Assembly: GCA_048013815.1 (NCBI GenBank)
Contig: CM106586.1
Span: forward strand, 1,736,001-1,800,000
Source: Setoptus koraiensis
Taxonomy: Eukaryota; Animalia; Arthropoda
Length of the DNA stretch: 64,000 bases
Direction of reading: 5' to 3'
Both the position numbers and the translations under genes were made by a program. The notes under the pieces were generated by a model. That model was not told where the DNA came from, did not search any database, and saw only the letters and a list, made by a program, of their open reading frames with translations. Of this stretch, positions 4,221 to 24,960 are shown one piece after another (positions within the stretch are counted from its first letter, which is position 1; each line of letters begins with the position of its first letter).

Positions 4221-6479
4221 GCAGCAATGCGATACGGACCGAGTGCGTTGCGTGGTGGCTGCGACGACGCAATGAGGACAACAGCCACACTTGCGCTTAG
4301 TATGGCACAAGTTCACTATCATTCTATTATCGTTGCATTATGGTTGCATGGTCGCTATAGCTTCGCAAGTTGGGCTGCATGGTCGCTGGAAAGGCGCACG
4401 AATGGCCGCTTGGTCAGTGTGTGTGTGCATTGTGTGGCGTTGCGAGGCAGCTGCATGCAGCCTGTGGCATGCAGCAGGGCCATTAGTTGGCAAAAGCTGA
4501 AAAAGCGGCCAGTTGGGACTGCAAACTTTGCAGTAAGTGAATAGAATGGCGCGCCATAATGCATCGCTTGCCACTCTTCTCTGGCCGGCTGCTGGCTGGT
4601 CGCTGGCTGGCTAGTCGCTGGCTGCTGGCCGCTGAGACGACGATGATCAGCATCAAATAATAAATAATAAATAGTAAATCCTCTCCTCACTGCAACTTGT
4701 GTGTGTTTGTGCAACTAAGTCGGCCACCGACTCAACCGGCACTCGCTATTATGTAACTGGCGCGATGTTTGCCGTGCGGCGACCGTTCGATTCGATTGGA
4801 CACATCGATGAGTGCGATTGGATGTGCCGAGCGAGCGGCAGATGTGACCACAAGCATCCAACGAAAGCATCTCTGGCGCAGCTCACGGCGCACGCTTGAG
4901 TCCCCAGTCGCGTAAATTCAGTGTGCAATTGCGGTTGCAGTCGGAATGTTCGACGTTTTACTCATATGCGCTCCCACAACACACACACACACAACATACT
5001 GAGGCACAGTGTGTATGGTCAGGGGCAATAGTGGGCCAGTTAGGCGCACAGCCAGCAGTTGGCGACTCAAGAGCCGCTTTTTATTTATTGTGGCTATTAT
5101 TAGAAACGCCGCAACACATGCAGCGGCAGCAGCAGCTCGATTTGTGTTGCTTGTGCTCGCTTGGTTCAACCAAGTTGTGTGTGTGTGTGTGTGTGAGTGG
5201 CCGAGACTCAAACAGACAGCGCAACGTTACTCCGGTGAGTAGAGCAGAGTCTGGTGCCGAGATCGTGCTCATTCTGCTCGCCATTCCATCGGTATGCCAG
5301 TTGTGCGCTCGCGTGTGCTCAATACTGTAGCACAAGCCAGCAGCATGTGTAGCTAGAGCAACTGGTGAGCCACTCTTGAGTCGGCCAGACTCAATTCGGC
5401 TGGCGAGCGTGTAAGCTTGTGAGCGAGCATGTCTCGTTCGTTGCTAACGGATTCATCAGCGTCGACAGCTGTGTCAGTGCGAGCGAGCCTGAGTGTGTGT
5501 GTGTGTGTGTGTGTGAAGACGGCCAAGCCAGTGGGCTCAAGCTCAGGCAACAGCAAGCTACGGGCAGCAGCAAGCGGACACTCACATTTAGTTCGATAGT
5601 TTTCTCCTTTCTTGTTCGCTCGGCTGGACTTTATTTTCATGTGTGTGCTTGTATTGTACGGTTGTGTGTGTGTGTGTGTGTGTGACTTGACACACTCAAT
5701 AATAGAGTTGCTCGTCAAGTAGCTCAAAAAGTTCGCTCAAATCGAACAACAGCAGCGGTGGCAGCAGTGTGTCCAACTGTCCATTCCATCAATAGTTGGA
5801 TGCAACGACTACCAGCGACTACTTGTGACACAGCACGCCGACTAACGAACTTATCAAGAAAGTTCGCTAGTGCGCCAGGTCAAGCAAAATTGTGTTGGTT
5901 GGAGTGGCAAGCAGCACACAAAGCAGCCAGTATAATTATTAATCATAATCGATCTGTGTTGATTACAATCAGCCCGTAGCGACTCCTTTCTCCGCCATCC
6001 AATGCGATACAATTCGATCGAGACAAGCATTGCATGGTGCGCCTTAGTTAATTAACGGCGACACACTCACACAATTATCACCGCAAATTCACCACTCGCA
6101 AGCTTGTCAGCAACAACTAAGGAGCCATATTATAGCCACTCTAAACCATTAGCCATTGATACAACACTAGTGATTATTAGCTGACGATTAATTAATAAGT
6201 AGCAACAATATTAATGATATTTTACATTCATTTATCTTGTAATATTGGCATTTGTAATATTTGCACCACAATATTGGAACCATTTGCACTACAATTCTTA
6301 ATATTATTAACCAACTGCACATGATATAATATACGTATGGTATAATAACACAACTAACAGCGGAATCGGTCACTATTTACAACGACTTCTCGCAACCACA
6401 AAAACCAAAAACATTCACCTTAGTCACCATTAAACTAACCGGACCAATCAACGCAAACAACCAACAACAATATGATGCA

Positions 6480-9400
6480 ATGAAACACAATTACAATCAA
6501 CAGCAGACAACAACCATTGACATAGTGACAACAACCAATGCAACAACAAATCACCGCGACCAATCGCCACTACGTGTTAACAAGTCATCAATAGTAACAA
6601 CAAACTCAAATTTCAACAATATTCTACTCACATCAGCAACTAATGGTGACCGTGACTCAAACAACGACAGCAACAACAATGAATGTCAAATTATTCCGCT
6701 GAATTCCATTGAATCGTCGCCACGAACAACTCCACTTGATTGCACACCGGCATCATTATCAGACCAGCACAGGTCAGCCAATCAAGAGGATCCCATTATA
6801 GACAAAATAGACACAGGCGATGCAACTGATGCAACTGATGCAACTGATGCAACTGGTGCAACTGATGCAACACACAGTCAATATATATTAGCACCAACAA
6901 GCAACAATAGTAACATTAGTGTCAACATCAACATCACAATAGCCAACCATAATAGTAATAGTAGTAAGACAACCACCACTAATGAATTTGATACTTCGGA
7001 CAACAGCACCACATCAATTAATCGTCTCTGCTCGCAGTCATCACTATCAACTAAAACATCATCAACTAAAATTGCATCACGCCAAGAAAAAGAAGAAAAA
7101 GCAACAACAGGTGGAAAGAGAATTCTAGAAGCTATAGTAGCTACAACAGCATTAGCAACTAGAGAACAATTCAACATAGTGCAAAACAATTCGGGCAAGC
7201 AAGAACTAGCTCGTGTTACATCTATGTTGTCATCGCAGACGTTAGCAGCGTCGTCAAATTCATTGCCACTATCGTCATCAACTAACGACAACAAAGATAA
7301 TGATAATATGGCGCACACAACAACAAAACAACAACAACAACAAAATACCGATGTCAATAATAGTCACATAATGAAACAGCCAGAGAAAGAACACGATCCA
7401 CGTTCACCGACAATGACCGGTAATCAAATGATACAAACCACGAAGGTCATCGATTTCAGCATTTCAACGTTGGATCAGCAGAAAATATCAAGAGCTCAAA
7501 CAGACATCAAAACAACAACAGCAACAACTACAAAAAATACCATATTGAACAACAACATGTCTGCATCGAATCAACAAACAGATAAAAAATCGAATGTTGA
7601 ATCGGCGACACAGACCATCTTGAAAAATAACAATTCCGATGTTGCAACTGCCACCTCCAGACCAGCGGCAACAGATATCAATAGTGAAAACCAACAAGGC
7701 AATCATGATACCAATAACAATACAAACACCAATACTAATACCAACACCAACTGTGATAATAACTGTAGAGACGGCCAACCTAAGAGATTACAGCTAATGA
7801 GTCAAAACAATAATAGTAATAATAATAACAATTATAATAATAATAACAATAACAATAGCAGTAGCAGTAGTAATAATACTATAACTAATAACAACGGAAA
7901 ATGTATGATCAGCAATAGCAACAATAATAGTGGCGGTTGTATAGGCAAGCAAATGACAAATTCTATATCAAATTTAGTTATCAACAACAACAGCAAATCT
8001 ACTACGCAACCTGTTATTTCCCATAAACAAAATAATAATAATAGTAGCAACAACAGTGCACTTGGAGAAATTACGCCAAGACTTATGATAAATCGTCATT
8101 CTGGTTTGAACCACAATCAACAACAGAATTCACCTGTTCATCTTGTAAGATATAGAGCACACAAAAAGAGACGATGTCGTAGTAGTAATGGTAGTAGCAC
8201 AGGCGAAGAAATGAGCGATTGTGATTTAGATGGGCCAGATCAACTTGATTTAAGCAGCAGTAATGATAGCAGTAGTATAAGCGATGACAATGAATTTAAA
8301 TATGGACCAGGAATCGTCGATAGATTGAAGAATAAATTCTTATCCATGCAACAACTACACAATAGTCAACGGCCAACTAATTTTCCGACCAATGGATCCC
8401 ACATACATACCAATGGCTGTAATACAACCATCAATCAACAGCTTGGACAACATACCCAACAAAGACAAAATCAACGTTGGTTCAGTAGTAGTGTAGACAG
8501 CCTTATAGCTGCTGCAACAGCCGCAATCAGTGGAGTACCAACTCATTCTAATCTCAGATTAGCCTCCACTAAGTCTGTCTTGAGCCCAAGTGCCAACTCG
8601 GTTCGATCAACCCCAACAGGTACACCGTCATTAGCAATGGCCACAAAAGGTGGTAAGCTGGCCGCTGGTATTGGCGCAAATGGTATCGCAAAATCAAATG
8701 ACGTAATTGTTTTATCTAGCTCACATAATAACAACATCAACAATGATTGCTCATCAATTGCCACCCATCAGAAACAGCAAATAATATCCGCTTCTAAACC
8801 AGAAAATGCTCCATGTACTACAACCACCAACGCCAAATTAATTCAACCCGCAAAGCGTCAGCCAATTTTCAAAAAGCAGCAACACGAATCATCTGCATCG
8901 ACATCGTCAAAATCTCCATATTCTATGACAAGTGTAGGTTCCTCAACTGCTCAAGGTTTACTTCTGAGACGCCAACAACACCAGCAAGTTCATCTGAATG
9001 GTAACGCACCAACGTCTGTTGCTCAATCGTCATGTCAAGTTCCTGATTTCAAAAGTGAGCAGTTATCATTAAAAGAAACAACAAATTCTAAAGACGACAG
9101 ACAGATCGTATCTAAGAAAAATGTTACCAATTCCATTGTGCTTGCTACCGATGATCATCAACAACAAAAGCTTGTTGCAGATTTTGTTGTAGTTGATGAT
9201 AACAATACGAACTCTAGTAATTTCAGCGATTGCGGAGGTAGCCTAGCAGAAGAAAATTGCCCATCTTCGTCGACCGAATTGTACCAAGATTCCGATAAGC
9301 AACAACTTGCTAGTGACGCAATAGTGCAAACGTCACAGTGCAGTGAATCTTCAGCACCCACTACATGTAAGCGAAACGACACGGCGGCTGATCTAGTTGT

Positions 9401-11832
9401 CCCATCGGCAAGATCTACAATACATAACGCAGTTAAGAGTACATCAGACGAATTGCAAAATAATGTCTTGTTACATAAGAGTATTGGCCAACAACAGCAA
9501 CAACAATTTCATAACTCCATCGTCAAACACCCAGAGCTACAAATAACAGCCAGATGTTCCAATAAGCCATTACATAACTATACTCGTTTTGTGTCTGCAA
9601 CAAGTGGTAGTACCGTAACAAAAACCATTGACAGAATGGCCATTATAGATGATCCATCTCACCTAAGTAAACAACAAAAGAAAAGAGAGAATCCACCAGT
9701 TCTTAAAGCCATGAGTAATGCTGTTGCTGAGATTACAGCAGCGACAACTTATACAACAACAACAAAACAAATTATTAATACAAATCCAAGCATTGATTTC
9801 AACGAGTTGCCCAAACCCGACATAGTTAAAACTTGTAAGAGGATCTTCGAACCTGAACAAAATGCCCAAACTCATAGGAGGTCAGCTAGAGCTGATATAA
9901 CCAATTCAATTGATCAACATTATCACCAGAGAAAGGTGCCAATATCTTCGCAATATCTGACCAACAATAAAAGGTTGTGTAATGATAGAATATTAGAGCC
10001 GGTTCCAAGGTCTATTGTCACAAATGGAACCACTACATCTACTGCACACAATTTGACAGGTGACAGTGGTGCCGACAGCAACAATAGGATACCGTCCTGT
10101 CACGCTCAGACAGCTCAAACTAATCTAGAGCCAGAACATAACAGTGAGAAGAGTGATATTACCACAACTAGTATCAAGACAGCAGAAAAGATTGAAAAAG
10201 GATCGAATACAAATAAAATGTTGGAGGATAAAGGTAAGCGAAATAGAGAGATAAGATAGATGCAAATGATTTTTTAATAACTGCCTCTTCCGTTCACACC
10301 GTTATTGAATCTGCAAGATGAACTCGTTATGTACGGTTCTTCTTTGACAATCGCGAGTAACCCTTGCCTGAATTTACTAGTATCTTGATTTGTTTTCTTT
10401 ATAAATCCGGTAAAGAAAAAAGATTCACAGCATGACTATACAATGAATTGTTGCTGCTGACAAGAGTATGTTGCAATATTCCACGATTTGCATCGAATAG
10501 TCAGTCAACTAGAGGAGAGAACGTTAGTTTGTTGTTATCTATTCGTGTTAGGTAAACAGCTTCTGATGGATGTTGTTTTGAACTGACGAAAGAGTTCATC
10601 GACATTACAAATGAATTATTACCAATGGTCGAGCTCTGTTGTCAGCGACGTCATCTTTTTGTTGATGATCATCTACCTAACTAAAATAGCTACTATAAGT
10701 TAGCGTCAATTGTTGTTGTGAATTAATGTGTATGCGTGATCTACCTGATTTGACAAAATAAAATGGTGTGTATACACATTATTCAATACACGGTTATTTG
10801 TAAAGGGTTGTACAGGCAACAGGCGAATTTGTGTGTATAGTAGATGAACTGTTCGCAGAGTAACACTCTTGTTTTTTCTTTAAGATGAAACAAAAAATCA
10901 ATTAGATAAATGCCCGAGAGTATGTTAGTGAAGTATGTGACTCATATGAACTCTCAGTTGAACCCGATGTCTAACACAAAATGAATTGAATCATCTTCAT
11001 CTGTTCTAGCGTATACTATAAAGCATCCATGTTGTTACATAATAACAATATAAAATCGTTCTAGAATGGCAGCCGCTAATATGATAGGTCACATGTGAGA
11101 CCTTCATTCAATATAAACCTACGAGACAATCAGGTTGTCACAGAGGTTAGATGAGAGTTATATTATATTGTTCAGATAGCTCTAACGCAATCACAAGCCA
11201 TATGATTAGCGCCATATGATGAATTTCTCTAACCATATTTGACAGTAGTTTTCAAAAGATTATCCTCTCGATAACAATATACCACCACTGTACTGACTAT
11301 CTAACTCTAACAAGTGATTTTTTTGCGGTAGCATTGAGTACTGTTCTGCTTTAATACAGTCGGTACGATTACAACTATAGAAATTAACCATCACCATAAG
11401 TAGCGGCTACAACAATGTTCTTATCACAGACTACCATATAACATGTACAAAGATCCGGTATATTCTGATTCGATTGTAGTGATATAACTAATTAGTGGTA
11501 TTGTGTTTGAAGGTGGAGTCATACCACTGCAGTTGATCTTCGTGCTGATTTGTGAGCATCATATTACATTTGCAGAAGAAACAAATTAACAAACAAAATC
11601 ATCTATATAAGGAAAATTCTTTTGACGTTATTGAGCCTGTACTACGCAACGAGTCATATAGTGATTGTTCATCTTTTTGTTGTCATGTTTAATTAGTACA
11701 GAACAGCCTTACTAACAAACTTGTCGCTTGATCCATCAAAAAACAAGAATAAAAAACAATTACCAAGAAAGAGCTCTGGGTTACGTATCATGTCAAAATA
11801 ATAACTAATACTTCTCTAATAGACAAAGGATA

Positions 11833-11909
<77 letters not shown>

Positions 11910-12037
11910 TGATGGTTGAAGATATGCATGCAGGTTGAATTACCTAGCCAAGATGAAAGAGATAAAGAGAAGGGGATAATTTAGTGGTGACTAAAAGTTT
12001 CATCGTGATACTAGCTATCTAATATCATGATACAGAG

Positions 12038-12068
<31 letters not shown>

Positions 12069-15000
12069 GAAAGGGGGGAGAGAGGGAAAGAGAGAGCAGT
12101 GTCGTATGTCAATGACATGAACAAGAGAGCATGGAAGAATGGGAAGTTATAAATGAATAAAAAAAGAAAGAAGTTTAATCGATATACTTCGATAAGCAAT
12201 CTAAGTGTATCCATGACAAAGAGTTGCATTCAGTATAGGCAAAAACAATAATATAATGATAAACATTACTATTGGTGGCTTCGCATCGAGTACAATGAGA
12301 CGAAACACGCACCAAATAGAATAGTAGTAAAATTAAATCGATCATCCAGACGTGTACAGACAGTTTCAATTTGCCGGAATCTCTCAAAAGACTCAGTGGA
12401 CTACATGATACTCTCTCTAACCACAGTCTATCAATTCATTTCTTGCTCTCATATATTTATATATATATATATATACATACATACATACATACATACACAC
12501 ATCCAAATCGTCGTCCTCGCCAACACGGGAAATTAATTTTATCATTTATTAATATTTATTTATTTATCAAAAATACAAATGGTTAAAATAAATTTGAATT
12601 GCTTTAAAAAACAAATTTTAATTGGACTAAAATATACACCTACAGTAGATACAGAGGAGAAAACAAACTCATCAAACTCTACAAATATGATCATGAAAAT
12701 TCCTTCGATTACAACAAGTGATCACTCGACATTATCAACGACTCTAACTTCCGTCCAGCAGCCTATGTCGAGCATCAATGAGTTTATTGTTCACCATCAG
12801 GAGCACAATGCCTCTTCATTGATATCATCCTCTTCAAGTGACACTATTAACTCACATTCCTTAGCATATCAATTAAACTCAGATGCAACAATAACAACTA
12901 ATGGCAACAATAATCAGCACAAACAATTAAAACCAGAAAACAAAGTAGAAGAACCAAAAAATGTAATACCACGAAATAAGACACCAGCAACAGCTACGGT
13001 AACGGAAACGACAAGACCGCCCCAAGAGACAACTCTATCCAGTACGTTTCAAAAGACCGCCAACAATAGTCAAACAGGCCAGTTGCGTGCGATAGTAGGC
13101 AAAAGTTCTCTTTGGTCAGCTCAAACAACTTATTCACCACACACAAAAAGCCAAACAATTTTAGATCAAAACTTATCGTCAACCACAAAATCATTGTCAT
13201 CGCATTTGAATAATACAGCTAACAACTACAGCTGCAACGGTAGCAACAACAATAATATCATGGATAACAAAACTAATTCTTTCAGAACTCAAGTTAGTGG
13301 CGTCACAACAACCAGAACCTCGTCAGGAGGAGCCACTACCACAACTATTGTATTTGACTTCAGAGGGAAAAACGTAAAGCCAAATGTTGCAGTGCAACCG
13401 CGTATGTTTGGCCTTCTAAGTCCGGCTTCAAGTGACCGTTGTACAAACGGTGGCCACGATGATGGTTATGATAACAACAATGGCTACGATTCTTGCCATC
13501 ATGACGACGGATCCATCGATTTTCCCATCGACGATTCTAGGCATAATGTTACTTTCGAGGGTGATAATGTTATTGTTGGCAATGGTTCACTGTTAATCAA
13601 ACGCAACAAACAGGTAAATATCTTTATTGGTGAATCCCACAACTTTATCATTTGTGTAATTAGCCATTTAATTGCACAAACTCAACTGTTGTCAACAATT
13701 TTCTCATAGTTTCTATTTGAAATTCACTTTGTCTGCCCATATCTTCATGCACACAGCTCAAGATTCAATTCGATGATAAGTCCACAATTACTTTTGAATA
13801 CCCATCCGAGGCGTCTATGTCAGCGGAGCTGTCGTCGCCAACATCAGTCAATTCCGGTCAGTAAAAGTACATTCACTTTACATAAGCTCTTTTGTGATCT
13901 ATATAAATATTTTACTCGCTTTCGAAATCTTTAACTGTGAATGTGTCTTATTTTCGGCATTTTCAAAAGAGAAGAATCACGATCATGTAACCCCATTAGG
14001 TCTCTATACTTATTGAATTCATTTGACAATAACCTGTTATGTGGCTTGAGTCTTGATTCCTCAATGGCTAAGAAAGTTACGCCAACCTCACTCGTATAAC
14101 TGCTCACTATCAATTGCCCAGTAGAAACTAGTCCAACGTTCATGCTGATGGCGGACTAGTTACTGCAGGGGACGGTGAAAAGAAGATGCGCCGAAAAACT
14201 CTAGCCCATCACAGAAAACGACTGGGAAATAATAGCTCTCGGACACGATTTACACTCACAGAAACAACAAGTGTCGAGCAATCGGGCATGCAACGGATTC
14301 AAGACGATTTCTCATCTTATTTTGCATGTACATGATCTAGTCTCATCATTATTATATACACTGTTGTGACTACATAACATTTAGATCTCAGCAGTTTGCT
14401 TTGGATGGCTAGTTTTAAGCGGTCAATACTAGCGAGAGAGATCTACCTACTGCCCTCTGTTTAGACTTTTGATCTGCCTAGACTGTATCATCATATTCAT
14501 CATAAATAGTTGCTTTATTATTATTATTATTATTACCACTACTACTACCATCGTTATCATCTTTCTTGTTTTGCTTGAGACCTTTGAAAATGATGATCCT
14601 TCTGCTAGCAAGATGAGTGAGATGGGTAACATTTATGGCGAACTTGATTTGCATAATCATAATGGAAACTCAAGATTGTTAGCCGGTATCATCGTCTCTT
14701 ATGCCTGACGATATGAAATGATTGTCGTGATTGCATTAATAATGATCTCGTTGTTATGTATAGTTACATATAAAGTATGTTGTTGCTTGGGTTGCACATC
14801 ATCAGCGATGATTGATATCAAACCGACATGTTGCTCAATACTGAAGTATTCCAACTACCATATTATCATCAGTGACAAGACATAGCCAGTAAATTAGGCA
14901 GATGTTGCTGAGTCATAATAGTTGTATTGAAAATATATGCGCGCTTGCGAATCCCCCAGTGTGAACGTTGTTACATAAGTTATGTGAGTCGTTCCTTTAA

Positions 15001-18000
15001 GAAATTCCAGTGATGGTGCTAGTGAACTTGAGGCCTCTGCAGGTAGAAATAACGGCAACAACATTCGTTACGGTCTGTCACTCATCCGAATGCACCAGCA
15101 GCCCTCTGTTTTTTGTTATCCACTTTTGGTCATTTTAGTTATTTTTGTGCATTTAATGAGATTATTATTTGTGATAACGGTATTCAACACGGTATCCTAT
15201 TGCGAAACTTCAATCTTCAGCCATACTTGCTTGGCTGCGCACTTTATTAAGTGAATGAAGTTATGATTTAGCAATACGGCAAGCACTAAATATTTTCACC
15301 CATCACAACCCTTCTTCCCGAGCTAGGAACAAAGAGAAAAGAAGCGTAACCTTTGCGGAAACACGTCAACTAAGTTTTAGTTGCCCACATAACATTGCCA
15401 TACTACATTACTTTGAATTGAATTCAAGATAATCTCGATTCTTTATTATGAACATAGTAGTGCAGGTAAAAGTCCGCTTACTTTAGTTCGACAATAAATG
15501 AAGATAAATCGCCAGACATAATGGCGATCTTCTATTAGGTGGTAGTGATAGATTAATTATAATTATAGAAAAAAAAATATCAAAAGAAGCATTCACGAGA
15601 ACCTAAGTGACTAGTCATTCAAGTCATACCTTAAATGTGTGCGTCTTGTTGTGATTAGCTTGCCAGTTAGCCAGTGTCCATTGAGTTTGTTTTGATTATA
15701 AAAATAAATCATGCCAGTTATATTCACAGCATTGTTACGAAATTATTAGCCGCTCGAGAGGGGTAAATGAAGCATAATGAAGAGAATTGAAAACCACAAG
15801 TTTCCAAGTGTTGATTGTTCCGATAAAAAGTCGTGATATCGTGAGCGATCAGCTACGAAAGTAATTCACACTCTTTCGTCATTGGACTCTCTTCTAGATA
15901 TTATGATAATCCCCTTAACGCTGCTGACGACCACGCCACACCATAACACCAGCGGTCACCACTCGCATTCAATTTTATTTATATTACTTCTCATATTTTT
16001 GTCCTGATTGGTATTTACCTAAGCTCGGCAGTTAGCCAGGAAGAACCGGCTACTTCCGAGAAAATGTGCCGAGAGTATTGTGCGAATGAATAAAACTGAA
16101 TGAGCAGCATTCAGTTATGTCAGGCATCTTTTTGCATCCGTGTGATCAACAGGTCACTAAATCAACAATGACCAGCTAGCACGACGATTGATTTATGTGC
16201 GATCCAGATTCACACGACCGAAACCTATCGTTCCCGCGACTATTTCCCAATCTAGTAAGATGGTGACCATTTGAAACTGATGTGGTGTGCGCTTCATGAT
16301 GATGCTGTTATGATTAAGATATCATACTACTACGATGGTAATGTTATTTTCACTCTACTTTCAATTAGTAACTGAATAGAAATAACGGCAGAATTTTCAC
16401 TCAGACCAACTTTTCATAAAAGCGACGACAGTCCAGTAGTAGGTCTGAAGTTACAGCAATCTATTGCTCTAGTTGGAGGCTTCCCAGCTATCATGTGAGT
16501 GGTCCAGACTGGGCTATTACTGACGCTGATAATAATGGCGAAAGCGCCAGTTTGACGATGATTTTACTAGCCGACCAACCAGTCGGCCAGCGGCGGCAAC
16601 AGTGCCATAGGTAAATATCCAGTATCCAGTGCCCAGTTTGAGCAACCTGTTAGATAGGAGTCTGGTGTGTTGTGGATAATCTGTTCGAATGCGATCAGTG
16701 TGTAAGAATAATAATACATGTAGTGTCTAACGTAGCATAATGTAAGCACGCCGAAGAGTGCGCATTTGACTCACACGCCAGCCTCCAAAATGGTCGTATA
16801 CTTGTTGTTGTTGTTTACAATTATACGACGACAACAACAAGGTAACTGCGATCTCTGATCAAGTAAGCTTTTGCCGGTTTTAGTTGTGGTGATCGGCCGA
16901 TGAGGGGCGCTTCTGGCAGCTGTGCTATGCAACATGAGCTTGCTGTAAGGTTGGTGTCGTTTTATTTCATGTTGTTGTTGGTTGTTCTCATCATTGCCAA
17001 TCATTTTAGCATTAGTTGTTTACAAAAATGTAATGATAATGAGCTCAAAGAAAGCTATCCGTCAGCCATTTGGTTTGCTTATTGATGCGCCAAGCGAATT
17101 GGTTAGACGGATCGGATGTTCCCATGTCGATGTGTCTCATTTTGTATATGGCAGCTTGAGTAAATAGACACATTTAAAAAAATCACCCATGTGTGCAGCG
17201 AGTGTGTCAAAGCTAGCTTACAACAACTCTTGCACAGCACAACAAGTATTTTTACCACCATCAAAGTTGTTCGTTCAAGTCATTAGTTGTGTGTATCGCT
17301 GTGTCGCCCCTCTCTCAAGGACTTTCCCTTTGTGTATCGTCATTGGAAACAGTATGCTGGAGCGCAATATAATTCCATCAAATTGTACTGCTAATACTGA
17401 TGGGGGTGGGGGAAAGGGATTTCGAATGGACTCACTTTCACAGAATTGATGAACAACAACGAAAATAGAAACAACAACAACAACAACAAGTTTGTCTTGT
17501 TACTGAAAACGTAAACAACTCTCGGCATGTTCGCGTACAGCGCTGCCTCCGCTGCTACCACTGCGTAACTTGGTGCGACGTGTTGTCATGTGCGCCGAAT
17601 GTGCGTTTTCTAAACTTGTGGTTGCACAAAAACAAATTGTGCGTTTGTGCGGGTTTGTGGTGCATTTCTACGAGAAACACTTGAGAGATTTCAATGCATT
17701 TGGGAGACCTTCAAATCCGTGCGAGCGAATTGTGCGTTGGCGCGCTTGGCGTGCGGTTATGTGCGCAATGTGTGAAAGTATATCAACAAAATCGTTGCTA
17801 TACAGTAGTGAGAATACCACATCTACACGATGTAAATGCAACGCACGACTGCTAGTACAACACTGCACCATAAGGAAACCACTGGATGCATAGTGCAAGT
17901 TATAGGCAGGGGAGAGCAGGGGATCCAGCGCACACTTTAGTGCGTTTAACTGGTGGGAGAGCAGACTGCGCGCGACAACCCATAACACACTGACAATGTT

Positions 18001-21000
18001 AGTGACTAACATGAGAAGTGAGCTAACAGAATCGAGCCTCCGTTTGTCGGAATGAAAACTTGTATGATTCAAGCCCTGCTGTTACTTTTAGTGAGCGTAA
18101 CATCATTACAGTTTGTAGACAGGCAAAGTGTAGTCGACGACAGTCCATTTTATCACTGTTAATTTAACACTATCGTCACAAGCAAACGGTCAACGAAAAA
18201 CACCAATCCAATCAAAAGCGCCTATTAGCCATGCACCAGATGCTGACGCAATTGGGCGAAATTGCCGTGTCACGAACGAATGGAGTTCTATTGTTTCCAC
18301 CACAATCATAACCATAAATAATACACATTACATAAACGGAGATAGATAATTCCACAGGGACAGAGAAGAAACTTTGGTAAAAGGCAACATTGTTTGCGCA
18401 ACACACAAACTATATCACAACTTTCAAGGCCCACCAATGTTAAGAATATCATTGCACAGACTAAATTCACTAGCTCCCAGATTGAGCTCATCGGTCAAGT
18501 TGCCAGGCATACCAGCTGCATCCGCAACGACCAGAACCAAGCAAATTTATCACTATAACACGAGCTCAAAAAATCATTTAGCATTGTCAGCGGACAGGAG
18601 CAGAGATTCTCATGAATTGTTGGACAACAACAGCAGCATGACTGTTAATGTGAAAAACAACAACTCTCTTCTATTGGCCAGTCACAGCCGCCATGCAGGC
18701 ACTAGCGCCGGTAAATATGCGCCAGCACCCAGCGTAAACGCTGTTATGCCTTTTGAGCATAATCGCAACAGCGAAAACGCTTTAGATCCGTCAAGACTAG
18801 TGCATAACCATTCTACAGGCATTCACAACGAAAACAATTACGCACTCTCAGAGGAGCTGCCCAGGTTGCCTGTTGCCGATTTAGAGCAAACAATGGAAAG
18901 ATTAAAAGAATCCTTGGCACCCTTTGCCATGAATAGCCAAGAGTATGCTGAAGCATTGAATTTAATCGACGAGTTCCAATCGTCGGCAGGTATCAAATTA
19001 AGCGTGCTTCTTAACGAGAAAGCGAAACAAACAAAGAATTGGATGTCGCACGACTGGTGGCAGCATGAGACCTATCTAAGTTGTAGAAGCTCTCTCATGA
19101 TCAATTCTAATCCGGCCATGATGTAAGTTTTCGTTTGTGTACCTCTAATACAACTGTCGGGCATCATTAGATGACTCCAGTGATAGATTGCGGCTAGCTG
19201 TTGCACTTGTACAGTTAATCAGAATCTTGTTTGCTTCTTATCAAGTGTTAGCGTCAATTGTAGATAGTGCATTAAGTAGAGTGCTCATTTCAATCTACTA
19301 ATAGCATCGTTTAACTATTCATTGATAAATATCCACACGTAAACACTCGAATATAAAAAATTGCAGATACCCCAAACTGCCTGATAGCTTGATGGCAAAA
19401 GGAGGCAGTCAAAAGGTTAATGAGTTTTTGGCACGTCTCATTGCGGCTTTCATGGATTGTCGTGAGGCTCTTAGAACTGGAACAAATCTAGAAATAACAT
19501 CAGCAGACTCTCAAAAAACAACTAAACTATGTCTTGATCAATATACAAAAATATTTGGTAGCACTAGAATACCGGTTACGGGTGTGGACAATATACATAT
19601 CAAAGATGTTAAACAATCGCTCGAAACATTCAAGGTTATCATTGCGCACAAAAACAAATTCTATCAACTAGACCTCAGTAACATCATAAGCACTAATGTC
19701 GACCCTAATTTCCAACAACGACGCTTAGACACTATCAAAAGTGCCTTGGAAATCATTGAAGCCAACTCTTCATTATCTGATGATGAGCAACAACAGCATG
19801 ATGAAGTGAGTAGCGCTCAATCAGCTAGACCGATTGGCATTCTGACTTCTTTGCCACGCGATGATTGGGCAAAAGTATATCCAATTCTCAATGACGAGGC
19901 TCTAGAAGCCATAGATGAGGCACAATTTGTCCTATGTCTGGACAGTATCAAAGAGGAGCATAAAATACAGTCATTCCTAAATGACCATACTCATCAAAAA
20001 GTCCTCGGCAAACATATACTGCATGCCGATAATGAAAATATTGGGAATCGTTGGTTCGATAAGACACTACAATTGATAGTCGTAGTTGACGATAGAGTAG
20101 AGAGATTATTTGGGGCTGGTATCAATTACGAGCACACACTCGCCGAAGCGATACCCATATCCAAAATTATCGAATATACATTCGAAAAGGTGACCTCGTC
20201 CATGTTGGAGGAACTATCCAGAAAATCGGAATTGTCCGAAGCGAAGCAAATTAATCCATTAAGACAACTGAACGAAATACCAACATCAACAAGTGACAGA
20301 CTGTCATCCAATGGCTACTCTACCATCAAACAACTGTCCATGTTTGATGTGTATGATTGTGCCGATCTAGATTCCAAACTGCATGATGCTAAGCAACACT
20401 ACGACATATCCACAAGTCGTTTAGATCTTGAGGTGCTCAACTTCACTCATTATGGTAAGAGAGCCATCAAAGCGTGGCAATGCTCGCCTGATTCTTGGAT
20501 TCAAGTGGCACTATCACTCGCATACTACAATCTGCACGGCAGATTAAGTCCTTGCTACGAGAGTGTTAGCTTGCGAAAATTCGCTTATGGTAGGACGGAA
20601 ACTATGCGAAGTCTAACCCAAGAGGTGGCGCAATTCTGTCTAAATCCCAACTACGATAGCTTGCGACAAGCTGTAGCCGCACATAACTATCTGTCTAGAG
20701 CAGCATCAAATGGGCAAGGTTTAGATAGAGTTCTTCTGGGCTATAAATTAGCCTTCAACGAGGTTCTATCAGGTCAATGGAAATGGGGACTAACCTTAGA
20801 TTCCGATAATATTGGTGATTCATCTCAAAATCATTCGGGTACAACGTTCGACAGCACAAGAATTTTCAATGATGACGATATTCGAGTTACCAAGAATCTT
20901 ATGAACAACAAGCTGATCCAACGATCTAAACGATTTGTTCTGTCAACATCGCAAGTTAACTCAATATATCCTAACACATTTCTGACCTATGGGCCATTGG

Positions 21001-23448
21001 TGCCAGAGGGCTATGGTTGTTGTTACAATCCAACTAACGATCAGATTGTTTTTGCCATAACGGCAGATACCAGCAATCCTTCGCTAGATTGCAGTCCAAC
21101 CAAATACAAGGCTACTCTCGAAGAGAGCCTATTGCAAATGCAACTTTTGTTAAATCAAAACTATATATCTAATAGTAAACTGTGATCACCACTGATCTAA
21201 AATATTTTTTGAGCCAACCAAATCATGTCTTACGATACAACCACAAAAGAATCAAAAAAAGATCTAAACATAGATATCTTATGTTCTCTTGACACAAAGA
21301 AACTTCGAATTATAGCTGGTACCAAAAACGGAACTAATTTAACTATCATGCATGTTGTCGCATACAACAATAGTCACCAACTAGAACCTAAGCTTACAGT
21401 ATCATCATTGATCAGTTGTAATCAATCTTGTTAAAAACGTCTAACAGTCTATGAATGAAGGAGCTAGATTCAAAATGGAAACTTCATGAAAACTTTTGAG
21501 TTGCCCTGTAAACATCGATGAGTATTGAATTTCTGCCTCGAACGATTCGTGTGCTAACGCGGACTCATAACAACTTAGTTTTTGTTTAGTTCTTAAGTAA
21601 GAGCAACAGGGTTAGAGCTTCCCAATGAGATGATTGAAGGGATTGCTGACTGTTTTTTCATGATATCTTCTAACCTATGACGATAATGATGGCAAAATCT
21701 TAACGTATTGCGCTACTGCATGCTTGTTGAATTCACTTTTTTCTTATAGAGTTCCTCGCCACATATGTTGTTGCAAGTGATTTCGGCTTGTGATACGGGA
21801 TACACCCAGAGCCTAACAAGATGTCCCCTAGGAATTGTTTAGTTGCAATATTTTCATTTTATATTATTTCAAACTTATATGGTATAGGTGAGCACAATAT
21901 TTTGTTGGGATAGTCTAAAAAGTCTCGATATTATACGGTGTTTTAAATTGACCCAATTTTATTTTATCATCTTCCACAATTGAACACGGACACTTCCTGT
22001 TTATCAGCAATAGTGAATTGTGACGTGAAAGACTTGCTCAGAACCGGCAAACCAGAACTAGTGTCTGAAGAGTTTACTGTTGAGAAGCACCAGAGATATA
22101 AGGTTGGCCGTTCTACCTACAAGCCGGCGAGTTCTGACACGTCACGAAATTCAGTTGTTCAAGATGATGCTCGGCGTAAAGAGAAAACAATTATCTCTAG
22201 ACCAAGTGAACTAAACACTAAAAAATATCCTCTTAAGACCACCATGGGTCCCATTTTTCTATCTCCGGTGAAATCAGAAAGTGTGGCTCACAACGATAGA
22301 GGCTCGCAACCGACTGTCAAAGTTGGTCAAATAGGAATTGGGGACAAAATCAATGATAAGGAAGTCATTTTAGCTAACTATCGTGTTGTCATACCAATAC
22401 TTATTCCAAAAGTTCTGGTGCCTGTAAAACATGGTAGCATGGCTAGAAGCAAGTATGGTGGCGAAGATTTTCACAAGAGAGATCAGAAGATTAAATATGT
22501 CGAAACGAAACGAACGAAAATGGTTCCTATTCAAAGAAATGTTACTTACATTGAGGAGATCTATAAACCTGAGATGATCCCGCAGAAAATCGTCACTGAT
22601 TATGTCATCAGGGATCCCAATAATAAAAATCAAGAGAAAGTCGTTAAAACTGTTGTGAAAGATATCACCGAAGCTCCAATGAAGCTTTGATAGTAGCGAG
22701 TGGTTGTCATGTAAATGCTGGGCCGTAACAATAATAATAAATCAGTCTAACAGTGGGTAGTGGATAAAAGTTCATTCAGCTACTTTAACTACCTTGTTTA
22801 TGTTGCTGTTGGCTAGTTTTCGCAATTCCAAGATTTAAAGTAAAAATTTGCTTCCTCAACGATCCAAATGAGCAAATAACTCGATGATCAATCCTATCTA
22901 GGCTTAGATCTGCACTGTCATAGCATAGAACTTAACCTGTAATCTTTTATTTGTCTTTTAACACAATGTATTGATCTACAATAACATTAATAGGTGGACT
23001 CTCCAGTTACAAACCTTCAGCCCTGATGACAGTGGACACAAACGGCGGATTTGACCAGAAATTAGGCTCAAAAGATCTGAACAGGCACAATGAATATCTG
23101 AACAGCTTGCAGAATGGTCTTTCAAATAAATCTGATAAAAAGTCCACATCAAACGACGAACCATATACGAACAATAACGGAGTTATTTATGGTCAATCTA
23201 TAGCTCTCAATGGAATCTCGCCAAAATCTTACGGTCACAATGATAGTCCTACCGATGGTTTCAAGTATACTAAGTCAAATCATAGCAATATTTATGACGA
23301 CTCCACTTTGGAAATTAAAGCGGACACAAATTTGAACGGCCATGACAAATTCTCAAAAACTAATGACGGCGCCAATGATGATATCGACCTAAGGGAAACA
23401 ACAAATTGGTCATATGGCACATATGCCGCCCCTGAATTATTATTTTAG
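6480..23448 (+). CDS. Bifocal/taperin(phostensin)-like PP1-targeting, actin-associated low-complexity protein. Model join(6480..10233,12646..13613,13757..13856,22994..23448), 1758 aa, possibly 5'-incomplete
   Basis: All three junctions keep phase: aag|gtaagc...cctacag|ta (phase 1), cag|gtaaat...acacag|ctc (phase 0), tccg|gtcagt...taatag|gt (phase 1). Total 5277 nt is divisible by 3. The spliced product reads TFEGDNVIVGNGSLLIKRNKQ-LKIQFDDKSTITFEYPSEAS (RVxF-type KIQF followed by TFEYPSE, as in taperin KISF..FEYPSE and Drosophila Bifocal RVQF), then GGLSSYKPS, and ends ETTNWSYGTYAAPELLF. Family assignment is from recalled motifs, not a search. Confidence 0.7.
11836..11906. repeat. (GA)n microsatellite, about 35 units, in the 2.4-kb intron of the bifocal-like gene
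   Basis: Pure GA run. A second, degenerate GA/GAAA tract lies at about 12035-12100. Confidence 0.95.
12455..12500. repeat. Compound (TA)n(TACA)n microsatellite
   Basis: tatatatatatatatacatacatacatacatacatacacac. Confidence 0.85.
18437..21185 (+). CDS. CRAT: Carnitine O-acetyltransferase (choline/carnitine acyltransferase family). join(18437..19122,19367..21185), 834 aa
   Basis: Phase-2 intron at|gtaagt...ttgcag|a restores NSNPAMIYPKLP. Motifs: ELPRLPVADLEQT, NRWFDKTLQL, catalytic-His motif NYEHT, SPDSWIQVALSLAY, GRTETMRS, carnitine-binding LSTSQV, YGPLVPEGYGCCYNP. C-terminal SKL (PTS1). First in-frame ATG is 18437; the ORF-track start at 18374 is TTG. Confidence 0.88.
21821..22690 (+). CDS. 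Secreted orphan protein. join(21821..21887,22008..22690), 249 aa
   Basis: Donor atag|gtgagc and acceptor ttatcag|ca match in phase 1. The join creates a signal-peptide-like N-terminus MSPRNCLVAIFSFYIISNLYGIAIVNC/DVKD in front of a long, stop-free K/V/I/P-rich exon. AATAAA at 22736-22741. No recognised domain. Confidence 0.65.
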
Positions 23449-23898
23449 TTGAATTAATTGTAGATCATTTGTTACTAGACTGATGACAATTGCTGTAAAA
23501 ATTCAGGTATTGATTCTTAAGTATAAATATCTTGGAGCAATACAGTAATAAAGAAAAAATTTCTTGGCCAACTCAAAAGATAGCTCTGACAGACAAGACA
23601 TTCACTTGTGCCTTGTGCAGCATGTAAGGATGTTATGTTTGATGTTATCCTGACAACGATAATAAAGTTAGATAGAGTAAAAACTAGAATAAGTTGCTCG
23701 CTTTGTATAGATTATGGAGTACAAACTTTCTTTGAAGCTGATTCACACACGAGAACTTAGAGAGCTGCCACAAAAGAAATTCATGGGTAACCTTTATGAT
23801 TTTTATTTCTAGTTTTGATGAGACAATGACTTTATAGTTCCAGAGATATGTACACCATATATTTACAATCTCAAATTTTGATCTAGAATCTTTCTCGA

Positions 23899-24960
23899 TC
23901 AGGGTAGTACATCCATTAGTATTTGACGTGCGGTATCTGTTAATGCATCAGGAAATTTTATATCGAAATTGACTATTATATCTCCGCGTCTTGATGGTTC
24001 TTTGGGGTATGGGAGTCCGTAATTTGAAAGACGCTTAACGGTAGTCGGTGCAATGATATCTTTGAGATTGAGAGCAACTTTAGCACCTTCCAGGGTTGGT
24101 ACTTTAACTTTAGCCGTTCCAGAGAGTGCGTCCTTCAATGTTATCTTGGCAGTATATTTTACATCGTGACCCTCCCTCTGGAATATTGAATGAGGCTTGT
24201 CTTTGACTGTGAAGATTATATCAGCGGGTATAGAGTTTGGGCTTTGGTCGCCCTCTTTTTGAAATGTTATCTTAGTTCCTGACTTCCAACCTGGCTTCAC
24301 ATTGATGGTAAGTACTTTGTCCTCCATCACTGTTTGACCATTAGGCTGCGTTGTACGCCTTGTAATCTTCATTTTCTTGGTTGTGCCATAAAGGATTTCC
24401 TCTAATGTAAGGGGTAGATCTCTTTCGATGGGTGGATCCTGCTTGAGTTTCTTCTGCATTCCGTTGGAGGATCCAAAACTATGAGGTCCACCCATGAACT
24501 GGGAGCCCCCGAATTGATTTGATCTTGTGAATGGCTGACCGTCTGATGTATCCATTTCGGCAAAGCCGAAGATGTTTTCGAAAGGAACACCTGCACCGCC
24601 TGACATACTCTGAAATATGCCACCAAACTGATCGTCAGTTTGGAAGAACTGTTTAAACGTCTGGTATGGGTCGCCTTGAAACGTGTAAGAGAAGCTTCCA
24701 CCTTGGCCTGGATGACCGCCTCCTGCATTGGAGAAGCCGCCCTTGAGGCCCTCCTCACCGACCTGATCGTAGATATCTCTCTTCTTCTTGTCGGATAAAA
24801 CTTCGTAGGCCTCCGCTATATTCTTAAATTTCTCTTCTGCCCCGGGTGATTTGTTCTTGTCTGGATGAAATTTTAGAGCTTGCTTTTTGTAAGCTTTCTT
24901 GATTTCATCCTCCGTTGCAGTCTTTGAAATACCCAATTCTTTGTAATAGTCTTTGCCCAT
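23899..24960 (-). CDS. DNAJB4: Class II Hsp40 co-chaperone, DnaJ homolog subfamily B (DNAJB1/4/5 / DnaJ-1-like), 353 aa, intronless
   Basis: MGKDYY start, J-domain with HPDKNK, G/F-rich linker, no CxxCxGxG zinc finger, C-terminal substrate-binding domains ([15 protein letters not shown]; [13 protein letters not shown]). The exact DNAJB paralog is uncertain. Confidence 0.93.

Follow-up and report, generated by a model that had tools for sequence, protein, structure and literature searches.

In the 64,000-nucleotide (nt) window of Setoptus koraiensis DNA analyzed here (GCA_048013815.1, contig CM106586.1, 1,736,001-1,800,000 forward; all coordinates are those of the window unless a contig is named), the exon at 22994-23448 is probably the last exon of a gene whose preceding exon carries a PP1-docking motif, and 2 further genes, CRAT and an orphan gene, would accordingly lie nested on the same strand in the host's last intron. 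That intron, placed at 13857-22993 (+), is 9137 nt long and has a phase-1 donor and a phase-1 acceptor. The original prediction, made from the letters of this stretch, had assigned the distal exon to the PP1-motif gene, and comparison with other mites upholds the assignment by linkage, by phase-1 donors and acceptors, by purifying selection on the exon, by 3 of 8 loci in which no ATG precedes the first tail motif, and by the lack of any other conserved exon before CRAT.

The close relative in what follows is Logan contig L001, whose CRAT is 82% identical to that of the window; the contig begins downstream of the host donor and covers CRAT, the orphan gene, the tail exon, and a DnaJ gene. All ratios of nonsynonymous to synonymous substitution rates (dN/dS) compare the window with L001. 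The distant mites, referred to as the Aceria clade, have CRATs that in most cases are 37-39% identical to the window CRAT. Acceptors were compared at 8 loci, the tail exon was aligned over 28 tails, and copies were sought in the genome of 48.8 Mb in 2 contigs. Searches, folds, and alignments were all made with single exons.

Gene order and splice sites at the proposed 13856/22994 junction

The ends to be joined are as the original prediction had read them. The PP1-motif exon stops at 13856 with tccg|gtcagt in phase 1, and the host last exon, 22994-23448 (+), opens at the acceptor taatag|gt (22993/22994), also phase 1, which completes the codon and gives GGLSSYKPS. The tail exon closes with a stop at 23446-23448. 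Between the 2 exons, a two-exon CRAT and a two-exon orphan gene had been claimed on the same strand, and both are there, the first by its PF00755 match and the second by an ATG, donor, and stop that are kept in L001.

The check that had been proposed, synteny in related mites, came out with the same order in at least eight other species. The succession of PP1 exon, CRAT, tail exon, and DnaJ on the minus strand is found in L002/L003, L004, L005, and L014, and its downstream half (CRAT, tail exon, DnaJ) in L001, L006, L007, and the gene tables of P0139 and P0132. At the upstream end of the junction, the PP1-exon donor is A|GTAAGT in phase 1 without variation in L002, L004, L005, L012, and L013, and a read-through signature K-S-K is seen at the end of the PP1 exon in L014, P0161, and P0165; apart from this, the residues leading up to the donor are not conserved. 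At the downstream end, each of the 8 loci has a phase-1 AG 2-16 codons ahead of the conserved motif that comes first in the tail. Three of these (window, L001, L002) have no ATG before that motif and have an in-frame stop just upstream, so there the first tail motif is translatable only by way of a splice.

What might supply the upstream partner of that splice, other than the PP1 exon, is limited by the content of the interval. A six-frame comparison from PP1 exon to CRAT in distant species gave no conserved open reading frame (ORF), and from PP1 exon to tail exon, conserved coding sequence is limited to CRAT and, in the window lineage, to the orphan gene. Within 10000-24000, searches for Rfam families and for tRNAs found none.

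The tail exon

The exon reads G-GLSSYKPS ... WSYGTYAAPELLF in a frame that is open from 22975, with its first in-frame ATG at 23026. Alignment of the window with L001 shows about 75% identity with many indels upstream; precisely from the acceptor AG on, identity is about 90% and indels are absent. The 30 nt from the acceptor to the ATG at 23026 have 2 synonymous changes and 1 replacement. Over the whole exon, dS is 0.40 and dN 0.052 for a dN/dS of 0.13, versus 0.70 and 1.99 when the alternative frames are read, which shows purifying selection on the encoded tail. For the DnaJ gene next downstream, dN/dS is 0.037.

The 28 aligned tails share 4 conserved blocks, (G/A)LSxY(K/R)PSxL, IDxKLG(V)(K/R)xL, WSxNNGS(V/I)IYAQ, and WSNGT..TSDLLF, the last of which is the extreme C-terminus; the spacers between blocks are variable and of low complexity. 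AlphaFold2 run on the tail with its alignment gives a mean predicted local distance difference test score of 52 and just one three-residue helical turn, so that as modeled the tail reads as a disordered region bearing short linear motifs.

The tail has no match in the Protein Data Bank (PDB) or in Pfam. Its exon is single copy in the genome, and a word-based search with it returns the close relative's fragment only. A tail profile run against 1.84 billion representative proteins reached 35 proteins of 128-259 amino acids (aa), all ending in the tail motif; all of those looked up proved to be pieces of ORFs assembled from sequencing runs, and in this search the tail is confined to the mite clade. 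A bacterial repeat protein, P0155, was also matched by the profile and is unrelated.

An AATAAA at 23547-23552 (+), 99 nt past the tail exon stop, is probably the host poly(A) signal, and relatives have AATAAA or ATTAAA 19-110 nt after the tail stop in 5 of 6 cases. In L006 (3762-3793), the tail-exon stop and the convergent DnaJ stop are about 30 nt apart, so the 3' untranslated regions (UTRs) of the 2 genes must overlap there; the corresponding gap in the window is about 450 nt (23448 to 23899).

Other readings of the distal exon

Several observations count against joining 13856 to 22994. The window donor GTCAGT has a C at +3 where relatives have GTAAGT, and is suboptimal; a stop lies 3 codons past it, so that termination at SGQ is possible. 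The host donor of the close relative falls outside the L001 contig. The tail profile, run against 1.84 billion proteins, brought up no long sequence in which a PP1 motif and the tail are combined, and the phase-1 donor of orphan exon 1 could in principle splice in frame to the tail exon. Since the window donor is weaker than the relatives' GTAAGT, a short isoform reading through to SGQ may coexist with the spliced one. Carried further, the C at +3, the nearby stop, the want of a joined protein in public protein libraries, and the availability of an in-frame ATG at 23026 favor a host that simply ends by read-through at SGQ-TAA (13863-13865), with 22994-23448 as a separate small gene starting at that ATG or from an unrecognised small 5' exon. 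We give this an outside chance, because the 30 nt that would then be left untranslated ahead of the ATG encode the most conserved tail motif of the family and evolve like coding sequence in comparison with L001, L002 has no usable ATG before the first tail motif, L001 does not keep the ATG that could start a mini-exon ahead of the acceptor, and the relatives' invariant GTAAGT donor would have no purpose.

A little less probable again is that one of the nested genes supplies the exon to which the tail is joined, through the orphan exon 1 donor at 21887 or a cryptic donor in CRAT, and that the tail exon is thus an alternative end of that gene. The orphan exon 1 donor and the tail acceptor are indeed both phase 1, CRAT is just 170-370 nt from the tail exon in the Aceria clade, and CRAT lacks an SKL end in L004, L005, and Aceria. 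However, the Aceria clade lacks the orphan gene and yet conserves the tail exon equally, a conserved phase-1 donor is not to be found in the CRAT frames, which close with stop codons, the Aceria tosichella CRAT in UniProt contains neither PP1 motif nor tail, and the conserved donor of the PP1 exon would be left without an acceptor. As for an assembly artefact, or a 22994-23448 ORF that is non-coding, hardly any weight can be given to either. Misassembly, which the original prediction had listed as a way for it to fail, is not borne out, because independent assemblies, from at least eight other species, agree on the order, and the coding status is upheld by a dN/dS that is 0.13 in the frame used but 0.7 and 2.0 in the others.

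The host gene and its PP1-docking region

Taking 22994-23448 as the last exon of the PP1-motif gene, the exons before it are of unequal standing. Host exon 3, 13757-13856 (+), is 100 nt long and begins LKIQFDD; it includes a putative RVxF-type PP1-docking motif, KIQF, at 13760-13771, and when read unspliced past its donor continues as SGQ and then TAA at 13863-13865. Host exon 2, 12646-13613 (+), ends ...FEGDNVIVGNGSLLIKRNKQ (...GSLLIKRNKQ) at a phase-0 donor |gtaaat, and its last 23 residues align with the relatives' profile at hhalign E = 1.1e-11. The intron of 143 nt between them, 13614-13756 (+), interrupts the docking region and is secure because joining KRNKQ of exon 2 to LKIQF of exon 3 restores the stretch KRNKQLKI.F, which is present as unbroken KRNKQLKIKF in L002, L004, L005, and L012. 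The docking motif of relatives is KIKF, RIKF, RLKF, or KISF, and its flanks GSLL.(K/R)RNKQ and F/Y-EYPSE are kept in all relatives examined, making this the best-conserved stretch of the protein. L014:2-1150 (+) has the motif as exactly KISF, an uncommon variant that is also the one in vertebrate taperin/phostensin.

The PP1 exon is single copy in the genome. A fragment copy of exon 2 is located on another chromosome at G000:C1:2366023-2366250 (-), equal to L010:1381-1848 (-), covering the stretch ...TTRP.QETTL...NSQTGQLR...SSLWSAQTTYSP and including an in-frame TAA. It looks like a dead partial duplicate; an interpretation of this C1 match as a paralogue with N-terminal motifs was rejected on finding that it is a broken part-copy of exon 2.

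Farther upstream, a low-complexity open frame of 1251 codons at 6480-10233 (+) is a candidate for host exon 1, with a phase-1 donor g|gtaagc that is compatible with the acceptor at 12645/12646. It has no Pfam match, and the idea that it carries the invariant N-terminal motifs of the Aceria clade is unsupported (hhalign probability 1.4%). As a 1251-aa part of a 1758-aa host model, this candidate is neither backed nor refuted. The 2.4-kb gap between the frame at 6480-10233 and exon 2 contains long (GA)n tracts and a (TA)n/(TACA)n tract, at 11838-11906, 12035-12095, and 12455-12500.

Family relationships of the host

The sole Pfam match of the host is to Phostensin, PF13914, to which window exon 3 aligns at 19.8 bits and E = 1.3e-3 over profile positions 120-141 of 142, not reaching the gathering threshold of 25 bits. 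In L004, L002, and P0163, where the domain is unbroken, scores are 19.0-19.9 bits, likewise below the threshold, and 3 other relatives have no match to PF13914. All matches are confined to profile positions 116-142, the docking-motif end. Phostensin_N (PF13916) finds no match at E <= 1 in exon 1, exon 2, or the relatives' proteins. In the ESM Atlas, the L004 protein puts PPP1R18, TPRN, and taperin clusters at top rank with a score of 0.91 and 186 shared features.

The term bifocal-like, by which the gene had been introduced, rests on a sub-threshold Phostensin match and a language-model look-alike. Bifocal of Drosophila is a large, low-complexity, PP1-binding regulator of the cytoskeleton with an RVxF-type motif. 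The likeness that the original prediction had seen between the host tail and the C-termini of taperin/Bifocal proteins is a possible one. With vertebrate TPRN and PPP1R18, the host shares a KIxF PP1-docking motif inside the best-conserved stretch of a mostly low-complexity protein, and a C-terminal tail past the docking motif; it differs in that its Pfam score is sub-threshold and takes in only the last 22-27 profile positions, and in having no Phostensin_N domain match. We describe the host as taperin/phostensin-like, a PP1-docking protein that we do not place in the family itself. Restriction of the taperin family to vertebrates has been reported (PMC3507197), and mouse taperin has about 120 residues past its KISF motif, encoded with four exons (PMC12139522).

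A homologue of the mite PP1-docking gene is also annotated as a hypothetical protein of Olea europaea (P0169) on a 4.1-kb contig, most likely because the plant assembly is contaminated with mite DNA.

The nested CRAT gene

CRAT is encoded by 2 exons. Exon 1, 18437-19122 (+), starts with a presequence-like MLRISLHRLNS... and ends at a phase-2 donor at|gtaagt; exon 2, 19367-21185 (+), terminates in SKL, of the peroxisomal targeting signal 1 (PTS1) type. The splice at|gtaagt ... cag|a yields NPAMIYPKLP, the same as in relatives. PF00755, with a cut-off of 22.3 bits, matches exon 1 at 71 bits (E = 1e-19, profile positions 1-85) and exon 2 at 342 bits (E = 6e-102, positions 102-572 of 574), so that the gene is complete, with its own ATG, a full Carn_acyltransf domain, and its own stop. 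The nearest named matches are mite CRATs; exon 2 is 82% identical to P0001 and 36% to the CRAT of Aceria tosichella, which stands in UniProt as a protein on its own, without PP1 motif and without tail. The dN/dS of CRAT is 0.126.

In the Aceria clade, CRAT is a single exon with its stop 170-370 nt from the tail-exon acceptor. The intron at 19123-19366 in CRAT and that at 13614-13756 in the PP1 region are both absent from Aceria-clade contigs, which have single open frames in these places. This fits either a gain of the introns in the window lineage or a loss in the Aceria clade.

CRAT ends in SKL in the window (21177-21185) and in L002 (12296-12307). It ends without SKL in L004 (...SRTN, 9270-9287), L005 (...IENH, 4926-4935), and Aceria tosichella (...NNLN). 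Peroxisomal targeting of CRAT may thus differ among mites.

The nested orphan gene

Orphan exon 1, 21821-21887 (+), has a hydrophobic, signal-peptide-like start and a phase-1 donor g|gtgagc; its ATG, peptide, and donor are kept in L001. Exon 2, at about 22014-22690 (+), has a phase-1 acceptor and a TGA stop. Judging from its N-terminus, the product is probably secreted. Against its L001 counterpart, it has 66% amino-acid identity and a dN/dS of 0.42, and the stop is also conserved. An AATAAA at 22736-22741 (+), 46 nt past the orphan stop and within the host intron, is present as the original prediction had it, and is conserved in L001.

The genome has one copy of the orphan gene, which belongs to no Pfam or NCBIfam family. 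It is present only in the window lineage with L001, and is absent in L002, L004, L005, L006, L007, and L014. The orphan sequence G-R-S-T-Y-K-P-A-S (22106-22132) resembles G-L-S-S-Y-K-P-S-A of the tail (22996-23022), a resemblance that is not significant. An origin of the orphan as a duplicate of the tail exon is unsupported (BLASTP E = 0.28, hhalign probability 0.8%).

Age of the nesting

In the CRAT tree, the window and L001 together are sister (support 100/99) to a clade with Aceria tosichella and L002-L006, and the oribatid Oppia nitens lies outside both groups. Since the nesting is found on both sides of the split between those groups, it must be older than that split. The CRAT of Oppia nitens has unrelated genes as its neighbors, and the 10 kb around it contain neither a PP1 exon nor a tail exon. 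Two introns, one in CRAT and one in the PP1 domain, are particular to the window lineage, as is the orphan gene. The mite lineage has purged most of its introns.

How the locus may work

The host coding sequence would run from exon 2 to exon 3 with its KIQF, and from there to the distal exon, which would add a disordered tail of 151 residues with a C-terminal LLF. Its 9.1-kb intron would contain 2 independent genes on the same strand: CRAT, an ancient gene whose product starts with a mitochondrial-type N-terminus and closes with a peroxisomal SKL, and a young, fast-evolving orphan gene, which would have been inserted between CRAT and the tail exon in the window/L001 lineage only. Transcription of the host would have to run through 2 promoters and the AATAAA at 22736, and past 2 donor/acceptor pairs besides its own. 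As the original prediction proposed, this may entail tissue-exclusive expression, poly(A) suppression, or chimeric transcripts. The passage could be managed by a suppression of intronic cleavage sites coupled to splicing, or else by expression of the host and the nested genes at different times or in different cells. Mis-splices that stay in frame would be possible, as the host donor, the orphan exon 1 donor, the orphan exon 2 acceptor, and the tail acceptor are all in phase 1.

How CRAT ends in mites with so short an interval before the tail exon invites a more tentative idea. In the Aceria clade, AATAAA or ATTAAA is found between the CRAT stop and the acceptor (170-300 nt) at none of 5 loci, counts that are small and not significant alone; at a sixth locus, the sole such signal is 16 nt before the tail acceptor. 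With signals scarce after the CRAT stop and present after the tail stop (5 of 6), CRAT may end at the host poly(A) site, and host transcription may have fewer such obstacles to pass in this clade. It is conceivable, though we lean against it, that the ancestral CRAT had no poly(A) site of its own and ended at that of the host, the last exon of the host doubling as the CRAT 3' UTR in a co-terminal unit with 2 promoters. The nested CRAT would in that case have frozen what is apparently the only intron of the host, and the window lineage would later have inserted a gene with its own AATAAA.

Comparison with other nested genes and significance

The premise of the original prediction that nested genes are usually antisense to their host holds in Drosophila, where 71% are antisense to the including gene and about 29% are on the same strand (Lee and Chang 2013, PMC3814207). 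Of the same-strand nested genes in the fly, 72.5% have a single exon, and this bias has been taken as a sign of selection against mis-splicing (PMC3814207). The mite locus is like these in having complete genes within a same-strand intron, and the CRAT of the Aceria clade is single-exon too. It differs from them in that CRAT is an ancient housekeeping enzyme and not a young, testis-biased gene, in that the nesting has been kept across lineages whose CRATs are 37-39% identical, and in that the window set has expanded to 2 genes with introns, a class against which, to judge from the fly data, selection seems to act. Because same-strand nesting is already documented (PMC3814207), this is not a new kind of organization, and we regard the locus as a long-lived member of the rarer, same-strand class.

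ORF callers and gene predictors that do not provide for nesting would cut the PP1 regulator short at SGQ and present its tail as an orphan of its own, 140 aa long; all 35 library matches to the tail are fragments of this sort. How poly(A) and splice signals within introns get ignored could conveniently be studied in this locus as a natural case. It also gives a dated instance of same-strand nesting, absent in an oribatid and present in 2 lineages with CRATs less than 40% identical. The nesting has persisted in very compact, intron-poor genomes, and one lineage later gained a second nested gene that itself contains an intron. For the mite PP1-docking protein, the correct model would add a conserved C-terminal module consisting of 4 short motifs and the terminal LLF.

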